A stretch of 64,000 bases of DNA. It comes from Diadema antillarum. Taxonomy: Eukaryota. Within the stretch, counting starts at the first letter, position 1; every line of letters starts with the position of its first letter. The notes beneath the pieces were generated by a model, which saw only the letters and a list, made by a program, of their open reading frames with translations, did not search any database and was not told where the DNA came from. The stretch covers positions 3,348,001 through 3,412,000 of the forward strand of contig NW_027271598.1 of NCBI RefSeq assembly GCF_040938485.1, given 5' to 3'. Below, piece by piece: positions 54,193 through 57,249 of this stretch. The translations under genes and the position numbers were made by a program.

Positions 54193-56488
54193 GGGGGTGT
54201 TTCACAAAGATTTAAGTTTGACTTAACTCATGCGTAAATCCCCAAACCCTGCGTAAATCCCTAAGTCCTGCGTAAATTTACGCAGGACTTTGAATCCTGT
54301 TTCACAAAGCTTAAGTCATGCGTAAGTCCCACCAAGTCCTGCGTAACTCTACGCATGGCCTGAAGCCATGCGTAGAGTCAGACTTAAATTCCAAAATGGG
54401 AAGTTCAAAAGCATAATCAACTCCTAATATTCATTAATTTCTTCCACTTTATCTTATCCTGAGTGAGATGGCAGTATTTTTAACAAACTAGAGAATCACT
54501 AGTTTCGTAGAGGGTCTACTCCTACACTATTCACTGAACAATGGTCCAAATTAAAAATAGTCATAAAAATAGATCCCTACCTACAAATGTACTGGTAGTT
54601 TGAACTGTTAAGTTAAACCAAAATTTTAGCTCATAAAGAGCTATATAATCTACATGTATCTGGACTTTGGAAATTAATTATATTTCTACCAATCCTTTCT
54701 TACCTGTGTTATCTTCTTAGCTGCTTACCCATGAATATTAATGCATGCCTATCCATTATACTATAGATGTCATGCATTCACAACAAATTAGAAAAACCCA
54801 ACAAATTAGTTAGACCTATACCTGGTACTTGTTAGAAATATCATACCTCTTGTGTACAGGACAGGGCTGTGTCTATCTACACTAACTGGTTAGACCGATA
54901 AATTTGTCTCTTGTTTGGTAGCCTAATTGTATCTGTACAGTCTGTAATACGGTCGACTGCATTAGCGACCGATATACAATTAACAAGAGGCTACCCAACA
55001 AGAGGCAGATTTATTGGTCTACACCCCTACACATGACTGCCAATGAAATTAGCCAAGTTCCATTTCTACGGTACCAGTTACATCTTAATGAATGCTTTTT
55101 TTTTTCCTGGAAGCAAAAAACAAAACAAAATAAGACATAACAACCCCCCCCCCCCCCCAAGCATTTTGTGTCAGTTAGAGGAAACGGTTAGCCAATAGAC
55201 AGTCACCTCTGCCTCGCATCAAAGGCTACAGTATTAAACGTATACACGGAAAACGTTAGAGGTCTAGTAGTTTCTATGCCTAATCTTGATTGATGCAGTT
55301 CTCAAACACATTCCAAAATCCGAAAATGCATAAATTCATCAATTACTTTCCAATTCAACTCAGGGCCCAGCAATTGGACTTTAAAATTCGACCAATTGAT
55401 AGCCATAGCTATGATTTATTATGGTTCTAACTAACCTTATACATGCAGTCTAGGGCAATCATGCACTTTGTTTTCTTCAAAATCATGAAGATGTGGCACT
55501 GTGCCCCTATCCTGATTAATAACACAGTGCACAGACTCTACACTAACTGTTAGGCATAGGCATGTTTAATTGATAGTCATACTAATACTAGAACTGATAA
55601 GAGTTTATATGTAGACATAACTATACACAGCCCAGTTATTCGCACATTGTATTAACAGCGTCTGGTCGGGCTAATGTAGACATTGTCTAATGACATGATA
55701 TTACTAATGAGCAGACTCTACAAATTACAATACAAGTACTGGTACAACACACACAGAGTTCATAATATTCAGTCCCTTCCTAACCATGCTAACCTTCGAT
55801 GAATCATCTCTTGCTCAAATTACATAATTTCAAGGACCTACCTAATGACTAACACTTAACAGTAGTAACAGATTAAGCTACACTCACTTCTGTAGTTACG
55901 ACCAACCCTAGCTAGTTGGAAAAGAAAACTTCTCTTCGTGTGCAACAAGAGGCTAGCCAGAATCCTCTTCTACCAAGGTCCACAGTTACCAATTGTGCAA
56001 TGTGAATGGTTGTACAGAATGCAGAGATCATATCATCAGTGCCAGCTAGATGCTGCGAGCTGCGCGAGCAACCCCATTCATCCTAACTTTCACACAGTCC
56101 AATACATGTGGGACTGGATTAAAGAGGCCTCATGCACAAAACATCTGTTATATCAAAATAATCATCAAACGAGCGGCTATTCATGTACAAAAGAGAAATA
56201 ATATGAGTCAGTAAATGAGCACTGTGAATAACGAATGATACAGTAATGTCATGAATCGTAGTTGCAGAAAATCAAAGCAATTTCCCTTCCAGAAATTACT
56301 CAAAAATCATCAGCAGACAACAAATGGCTAATTTGCATATTTTTGGCTCGTACATTATTATTCAAATCGAATAAGTCAGTCTTAGCCTAAGATTGACTTT
56401 GTGAAACAGACTTAAAAAGTCGCACTTAGACTAAGATTGACTAGCGCTAAGTCTGACTTACTAAGTGCGACCTTTGTGAAACAGGCCC
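54193..56488. mobile_element. 2.3-kb non-autonomous PIF/Harbinger-like element
   Basis: TIRs GGGGGTGTTTCACAAAG / CTTTGTGAAACAGGCCC (15/17); 3-bp TSD CCG on both sides; TIR core repeated internally at both ends; subterminal TGCGTA arrays; no transposase ORF. Confidence 0.75.
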
Positions 56489-56772
56489 CCGATCTCATTG
56501 CACAATCACCCACCATCACCACGCTACGGCCACACTGACTAACAACTTTACGATAATAAACATCCTTCATTTTAGACTCGTTTGTAGATCAATCAAGATA
56601 TTTAGATGGCTTCTAGGTATGCGATGCAACAAATATATTCTTAAACTAAGTTACAGAAGGATTCGCTATTTACTGTATTCCTGTGTTATTGTACTGGACA
56701 CTCTGGAAATCGTAGGGCGGCCGCCGCTACGTTGCACAGGACGCGACGAGGTGTGGGCGGGCGGAGCGGGGA

Positions 56773-57014
56773 GCGTGTTTTTTTTAGACGGCACAGATTG
56801 GGGAAACTAAAAATCTATTGGGGGCCCTATCCCTAAACCTAACCCTAATCCTAACCCTAACCATCAAACCCTAACCCTAACCCTAACCCTAACCCTAACC
56901 CCAACCCTAACCCTAACCCTAACCATAACCATAACCAAAAACCCTAACCCAACGTTTTTCCCATAGGTTTAACACGCGCCATACCCCAATCTGTGCCGTC
57001 TTAAAAAAAAACGC
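56773..57014. mobile_element. MITE with 31-bp TIRs and 9-bp TSD carrying (CCCTAA)n
   Basis: TIR GCGT(G/T)T7(T/A)AGACGGCACAGATTGGGG (29/31); TSD GAGCGGGGA at 56764-56772 and 57015-57023. Confidence 0.85.
56831..56950. repeat. Interstitial telomere-type repeat (CCCTAA)n with variant units
   Basis: Direct reading: runs of CCCTAA mixed with CCATAA, CCCCAA and CCTAAT variants. Confidence 0.9.
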
Positions 57015-57249
57015 GAGCGGGGAGGCCAAATGGATGAACAGCTACAGCTGATGAACAGTATACAGCTGGCTCGCCGTAACAAACGTACACAAACGCACCG
57101 AATCCCTCTCACGCTACGTACCAGTGGGTTCCTGCATTTACACACATAACTATGGGGGTTCCTCTAGCACTAGCCAGCGCATCGGAGAATATCCTGTACC
57201 TTCATCATTGCATGCAGTGTACCATCGGTACCGGCCATGTATAGTACCA

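Follow-up and report, generated by a model that had tools for sequence, protein, structure and literature searches.

The window, the 64-kb stretch of Diadema antillarum DNA analysed here, was searched for inverted and direct repeats and with TRF, which together gave the anatomy of an element at positions 56773–57014. The element is 242 bp long, carries TIRs of 31 nt that pair at 29 of 31 positions (94% complementary), and is bounded on both sides by a perfect 9-bp TSD. Its parts, in window coordinates, are as follows.

56764–56772, no strand: left TSD copy, GAGCGGGGA, a 9-bp direct repeat that fits NNCCSGGNN.
56773–56803, plus strand: left TIR, consisting of GCGTG, then T8, then the 18-nt core AGACGGCACAGATTGGGG; one arm of the 31-nt inverted pair (29/31).
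56804–56824, plus strand: left subterminal unique region, AAACTAAAAATCTATYGGGGA..., kept among main-family copies (alignment A1).
56825–56950, plus strand, with the C-rich strand on plus: degenerate telomeric array (CCCTAA)n, from TRF.
56951–56983, plus strand: right subterminal unique region, which ends ...GTTTTTCCCATAGGTTTAACACGCGCCATR and diverges by 0.8% from the consensus.
56984–57014, minus strand: right TIR, the inverted partner of the left arm.
57015–57023, no strand: right TSD copy, GAGCGGGGA, with no second copy at the empty site on contig C709.

The central array was scored by TRF as 20.5 units of CCCTAA with 84% matches, and accounts for 126 of the 242 bp (52%). It includes a perfect (CCCTAA)5 at 56869–56898 and three further perfect units at 56905–56922. 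The TIR core is matched twice in the window, against an expectation of 0 (none in 100 shuffles). The stretch at 56700–56772 has a GC content of 0.71 and a CpG o/e of 1.33, compared with 0.39 and 0.50 for the whole window. An Rfam search of the region returned no family match, and a Pfam search of the nearest open frames around the element found nothing. The original prediction for this DNA had described an element of this length with these TIRs and this TSD, about half of it telomeric repeat, inserted in a CpG-rich stretch. The repeat search reproduced the boundaries in full, TRF bore out the telomeric share, and the base composition agrees with the CpG-rich setting, though the stretch is short. 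A second telomere-like site in the window, at 49225–49242, was considered as a further element and rejected, as it is without TIRs.

Family size and architecture

The genome searched was the window's own assembly (G000; 1.755 Gb in 2,963 contigs), in which Cn denotes a contig and Lnnn an inspected locus. The figures published for the Diadema antillarum assembly are 1.73–1.75 Gb and 2,964 scaffolds, and both haplotypes are retained in it, with 84.4% duplicated BUSCOs and 2.52% heterozygosity (PMC13511894; preprint 10.64898/2026.05.24.727502). The occurrence of MULE-domain matches as identical pairs on different contigs is consistent with the retention of both haplotypes.

A genome-wide search with the TIR core, allowing at most 2 mismatches, gave 1,446 matches per strand, compared with 12–13 for the reversed control. 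Many of these matches form inverted pairs spaced 192, 198, 204, 210 or 222 bp apart, that is, in steps of six. BLAST searches with two whole loci returned 1,482 and 1,490 first-look candidates. The counts agree on a family size of about 1,450 copies, both haplotypes of the assembly included.

The same architecture was found in all 9 paired copies first inspected, and also in the further copies examined. Alignment A1 comprises 11 independent copies with a mean column identity of 92%, and the TIRs are kept in all of them. Read from the left, the element begins with GCGTG(T)n, the TIR core, AAACTAAAAATCTATCGGGGACCCTAT, the degenerate stretch CCCTAAACCTAACCCTAATCCTAATCCTAACCCTAACCATCAAA and a perfect run. 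CCCCAA separates this run from another perfect one, after which come CCATAACCATAACCAAAAACCCTAACCCAACG, the right subterminal region, the TIR core again and (A)nCACGC. The array is marked by the landmarks CCATCAAA, CCCCAA, CCATAACCATAA and CCAAAAA, which are the same in the 11 independent copies. The two ends of the element differ from each other, and the C-rich strand is always read from the same end. Element lengths in a 30-copy sample range from 117 to 274 bp, with a median of 242. The element has no coding capacity, and telomeric units are present in all copies and subfamilies inspected. The family combines the features by which MITEs are recognised, namely TIRs, a TSD of fixed length, small, non-coding and homogeneous elements in high copy number, and single-copy empty sites.

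About 200 TIR matches continue with GGGGAC and form a class that is apparently without the left subterminal region; L021 and the right end of L031 suggest that about 22 nt may have been lost in it between two GGGGA repeats. Other short variants have cores of 91–160 nt, and the overall core range is from 91 nt to 248 nt. The poly-T/poly-A tract that separates GCGTG from the TIR core is of variable length, 8 to about 28 nt (e.g., in L021, L041, L045 and L048), and in some copies this terminal tract has turned into (TTA)n or (TG)n, so that each element holds three unstable simple repeats.

Target sites, recent insertion and candidate transposases

TSDs were surveyed in 24 copies anchored on their GCG...CGC termini. 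A perfect 9-bp TSD is present in 18 of the 24 copies and a TSD with one mismatch in 2 more, while it is unrecognisable in L015, L033/L037 and L049. All 18 perfect TSDs are 9 bp long, and none is 10 bp. In 20 of 20, position 4 is C and position 6 is G; position 5 holds either C or G, and C predominates at position 3 as G does at position 7. The target is, then, the palindrome NNCCSGGNN, always with a CpG, at which a transposase supplied in trans would make staggered cuts 9 bp apart.

The GC content of the flanks is 0.60 over the nearest 25 bp to the left and right, compared with 0.39–0.40 beyond 200 bp, and their CpG o/e is 0.8–1.2, compared with 0.50 for the 64-kb window. Copies lie in short GC- and CpG-rich patches, such as that at 56700–56772, because the target is NNCCSGGNN. 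In a CpG-depleted genome, a CpG-containing target may suffice to bias insertion toward unmethylated, promoter-like patches, and delivery of the array to promoter-like DNA is plausible from the measured preference for CpG-rich CCSGG sites. The strict target constitutes an unusually clean signature, which should help to name the responsible transposase.

Outside the TIRs, copies diverge from the consensus by 0.8% on the right side and 2.6% on the left side, values that are biased low by the selection of the sample through near-exact TIR matches. The best 40 BLAST copies are 88–98% identical to L026 over the whole element. An empty site, with a single target copy and flanks that are 92–99% identical, was found for each of the three main-family insertions tested. 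The empty site of the window copy is located at C709:454958–455824, where both flanks align at 92–95% and exactly the element plus one TSD copy is missing; it reads ...GGGCGGGCG GCGCGGGGA AGGCC.... For L026 (on C6), the counterpart on C619 matches the query at 1–588 and 846–1401 with a 6-nt overlap, and for L022 (on C5), the counterpart at C5:738710–739864 matches the query at 1–594 and 825–1401 at 99% with a 15-nt overlap. Filled/filled pairs provide positive controls (L006/L028, 99.6% over 2.3 kb; L033/L037, 96.6% over 2.5 kb). The members of a filled/empty pair (C709/C710 and others) are alleles or recent paralogues, and the sites are empty in either case. Since empty counterparts exist for all three insertions tested, the activity of the family is recent.

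The empty-site check proposed together with the original prediction thus came out in its favour, the unoccupied counterpart lying each time (3/3) on a second near-identical copy of the locus. Two outcomes that it had named against itself, the absence of other copies or TSDs and the absence of CCCTAA from the other copies, are contradicted by the hundreds of copies with TIRs and 9-bp TSDs and by the presence of CCCTAA in every copy inspected.

Just upstream of the MITE, the window contains at 56200–56489 a very young high-copy repeat, with at least 40 genomic copies that are 97–100% identical over about 290 bp. This repeat is absent from the C709 copy, whose homology begins at about position 56487 of the window. 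It is another polymorphic insertion, at 280 bp from the MITE. The left MITE flank at L022 (L022:900–1493; G000:C5:3044307–3044900) is also a repeat, of about 594 bp and with at least 40 copies at 95–99%, which ends exactly at the insertion site. A MITE copy also follows this flank repeat on C2051 (88% over query 1–855). The pattern suggests that one and the same target has been hit repeatedly in separate copies of the repeat, or that repeat and MITE form a composite unit.

The TSD of Mutator and MULE transposons is typically 9 bp. PMC10045372 gives TSD lengths of 4–10 bp for MuDR, 9–10 bp for AcademH and 8 bp for Merlin and IS1016. The 9-bp TSD of the MITE falls in the MuDR range and also in that of AcademH, and the fit to MuDR is thus not exclusive. 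The genome contains 22 matches to the MULE domain (PF10551), some of them in open frames of 656–1201 aa. None has a MITE TIR within ±1.5 kb, and the TIR is also missing from the 7.9 kb beside the 1201-aa MULE ORF. We would put the class of the enzyme at about 45% for MULE, about 25% for AcademH and about 30% for other or unknown.

Mobilisation of the family by an AcademH transposon (transposase plus helicase), and not by a Mutator-like one, is an unlikely alternative but one to be taken seriously. AcademH makes TSDs of 9 or 10 bp according to PMC10045372, which cites Kojima 2020, but the perfect TSDs of the MITE are 9 bp in 18 of 18 cases and never 10 bp. A Merlin-type (IS1595-like) transposase is much less probable still. 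Merlin-type ORFs are abundant and several are apparently intact (86 matches; 348–531 aa at multiple loci), but the TSD reported for Merlin and IS1016 is 8 bp (PMC10045372), in disagreement with the uniform 9 bp of the 18 perfect TSDs, and the one Merlin-type locus inspected (5 kb, with a 472-aa ORF) is without the MITE TIR. The assignment of the TSD to Mutator-like and also Merlin transposases in the original prediction fits on length for Mutator and fails on length for Merlin, and it had omitted AcademH. The autonomous element that was to be sought did not emerge, as none with these TIRs was found among the 22 MULE-domain matches, the one Merlin-type locus and the odd TIR continuations.

The 86 matches to the Merlin/IS1595-type domain (PF12762) include C92:539765, C147:1799354, C783:412210 and C1504:657090. 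Several of their frames, of 348–531 aa, are stop-free and have identical scores at multiple loci, which suggests recently active Merlin families, and decayed Merlin-type copies are clustered on C640 and C713.

Exact TIR cores with non-standard next bases number 20 (class K) and 213 (class MB). As autonomous relatives these continuations were rejected, those examined being MITE variants, nested insertions or truncations. A TIR pair spanning 3.2 kb on C4 was discarded as a longer relative, since it is a regular copy whose array houses a nested, unrelated element with 72-nt TIRs. This nested element (L031:1105–4087; G000:C4, about 1579604–1582586) is non-coding and about 3 kb long, has 72-nt TIRs that are 93% complementary, and contains tandem units of about 300 bp and a (GACG)n-like tract in its interior. 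L038 and L040, in which a TIR is followed by a non-telomeric interior, are a single locus present twice, with shared flanks, in which an unrelated repeat of about 840 bp is nested and no ORF occurs. L008/L054 and L046/L055 have authentic ends and target-type flanks, but lack a transposase domain and, over 8 kb, another TIR; beyond the TIR, they are unrelated to each other.

Another, small element, with CACAGAACTC...GAGTTCTGTG ends (CACAG..CTGTG) and an 8-bp TSD, ATTGGGGC, is found at the same position inside the MITE TIR at two loci, L054:2076 onward (G000:C2:6537875) and L084 (G000:C8:5402073). At L084 only a 34-bp palindrome, formed by its two joined ends, is left. To judge from the 8-bp TSD, this element looks hAT-like.

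The telomeric array and interstitial telomeric sequence

Differences in array length between copies correspond to whole hexamers within the two perfect runs. Run 1 holds 2–6 perfect units, and in short copies the unit number goes down to 3. In L033/L037, which represent the same insertion on two copies of the locus, the array differs by exactly 30 bp (5 hexamers) and the poly-T by 6 nt. This pair provides direct evidence that the array changes in length after insertion. Because the copies share the same landmarks in the same order and orientation, and differ in array length only by whole hexamers, the founder already had the array, and had it in degenerate form.

In the proposed mechanism, the degenerate array of the founder element would be copied passively with each transposition as a hitchhiking microsatellite, and post-insertion slippage would then cause the two perfect runs to gain and lose whole hexamers. 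The array itself may have originated, for example, by telomerase healing, or as filler DNA in the abortive gap repair of a longer progenitor. With a probability of about 0.9, the feature in the window belongs, as a single copy, to a young MITE family of high copy number (non-autonomous class II TIR transposons) whose array was inherited from the founder. The original prediction that transposition spreads telomere-repeat arrays is supported by the inherited array pattern, the TIRs and TSDs, and the empty sites (3/3). As for the cut-and-paste mobilisation that it invoked, insertion is borne out by these same empty sites, and excision would follow from the class of the element.

It is improbable, although worth considering, that the array is instead a working part of the element, serving as a platform for the transposase, for a Myb-like telomere-repeat-binding accessory protein or for the recruitment of a host telomere protein. 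Telomeric units are indeed kept in every TIR-sharing subfamily, with cores from 91 nt to 248 nt, as such a role would explain. However, all sequence between the subterminal regions is array, so that derivatives with internal deletions keep some of it by default. The number of units varies freely (2–6 in run 1; 3 units in short copies), and microsatellites are known to hitchhike in MITEs as a neutral phenomenon (PMC6947457). We likewise find it doubtful that the array acts as a functional module behind the success of the family, in which a telomere-repeat-binding factor would aid transposition or targeting, or would shield copies near promoters. If such a functional reading were true, transposition would supply interstitial telomeric sites to an animal genome on a major scale and under regulation.

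An independent origin of the arrays from locus to locus, through telomerase-assisted repair or through local expansion within a pre-existing MITE, is scarcely credible: array length does vary among copies, but it varies by whole hexamers inside two perfect runs, all 11 of the 11 aligned copies show the same landmarks with one order and one orientation with respect to the asymmetric ends, and the shared degenerate pattern therefore rules out independent telomerase additions.

The contribution of the MITE family, with its inherited array, to the interstitial telomeric sequence of the genome was estimated from exact matches. These number 55,011 for (CCCTAA)4 and 45,765 for (CCCTAA)5, the difference giving 9,246 perfect runs that are at least 4 units long. 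Copies in the 30-copy sample hold on average 0.9 perfect runs of at least 4 units and 1.6 (CCCTAA)4 matches each. The share of the family is roughly 14% of the perfect runs of at least 4 units, and about 4% of the (CCCTAA)4 matches. Most telomeric sequence in the genome is found in long arrays, and the MITE family is a minority by bases. Among the short dispersed telomeric sites in the first 5.16 Mb of contig C2, a small sample, 4 of 4 are copies of the MITE family. The proposal to measure the fraction of all interstitial telomeric sequence inside this MITE thus has a partial answer, in the 14% of runs and the four sampled sites.

A large telomeric block at C2:5.164–5.171 Mb, one example of the long arrays, was also considered as MITE-built and rejected, as it lacks the TIR and is dissimilar to the MITE. 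The block (C2:5164326–5171161; L094 covers 5164250–5166400) is internal in a 6.78-Mb contig and extends over more than 6.8 kb. It is organised as telomeric arrays of at least 0.2–0.4 kb that alternate with non-telomeric spacers of about 1.5 kb, with a period of about 2.1 kb. A relocated subtelomere, the relic of a fusion and a join made in assembly are its possible origins.

At least 4 perfect units are present in 20 of the 30 sampled copies. In sequence terms, 4 perfect units would suffice for a putative G-quadruplex or TRF-type site. DNA transposition has brought well over a thousand short (TTAGGG)n blocks into an animal genome, through insertions that are recent, polymorphic and aimed at CpG-containing GC-rich sites. 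Filled and empty copies of the same locus in one individual constitute a natural experiment on internal, promoter-like telomeric blocks. The value of the family lies in its clean target motif, its very recent activity and the filled/empty pairs, which make the function of internal telomeric repeats testable. Scans of echinoderm genomes for telomere motifs, such as those used for fusion inference and assembly-end checks, will be confounded by this MITE family.

Comparison with known systems

Internal tandem repeats or hitchhiking microsatellites are established in MITEs, and PMC6947457 lists the insect (GTCY)n MITEs (Coates et al. 2011), Xenopus Xstir and the bivalve BIV160/pearl-type elements. 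Like the microsatellite-carrying MITEs, the element described here is small, non-coding and bounded by TIRs, and has at its centre a simple-sequence array that is copied along and then changes in unit number. Unlike the repeat-carrying MITEs of insects, Xenopus and bivalves, its repeat is the telomeric hexamer, and its 9-bp TSD comes with the strict NNCCSGGNN target. A literature search, with most subscription journals, Repbase and Dfam outside it, found no animal MITE with an internal telomeric array. A MITE with simple-repeat cargo is therefore known as a kind, and telomere-repeat cargo is undescribed in the literature searched, which is not proof of novelty.

The family resembles the non-autonomous elements of MULEs, which have a GC-rich, gene-proximal and probably unmethylated preference, in its 9-bp TSD and in flanks that were measured here to be GC- and CpG-rich, and MULE transposase genes occur in the same genome. 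Unlike those of MULEs, the TIRs of the MITE are short (31 nt), and no MULE copy with these TIRs is found among the 22 matches. We know of no described MULE with a strict CCSGG core target. The family is also like AcademH with respect to the TSD range of 9–10 bp (Kojima 2020, as cited in PMC10045372).

The Oxytricha TBE of the ciliate germline is a protein-coding Tc1/mariner DNA transposon with telomeric repeats at its extreme ends (PMC4724952). The MITE is analogous to TBE in that both are DNA transposons that physically bear telomeric repeats. By contrast with TBE, the repeats of the MITE are internal, the element is non-coding, its termini are GCGTG..CACGC, its TSD is 9 bp and its host is an animal.

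Interstitial telomeric sequences are usually explained by telomerase-assisted repair of double-strand breaks or by chromosome fusion, and the short ones are reportedly the subject of a review by Lin and Yan from 2008, which is referenced in PMC9071541. Like the sequences derived from repair or fusion, the arrays of the MITE are short (TTAGGG)n blocks at internal chromosomal sites. Repair- and fusion-derived sequences, however, have no TIRs, no TSDs and no shared pattern of interruptions, whereas the MITE copies have all three.
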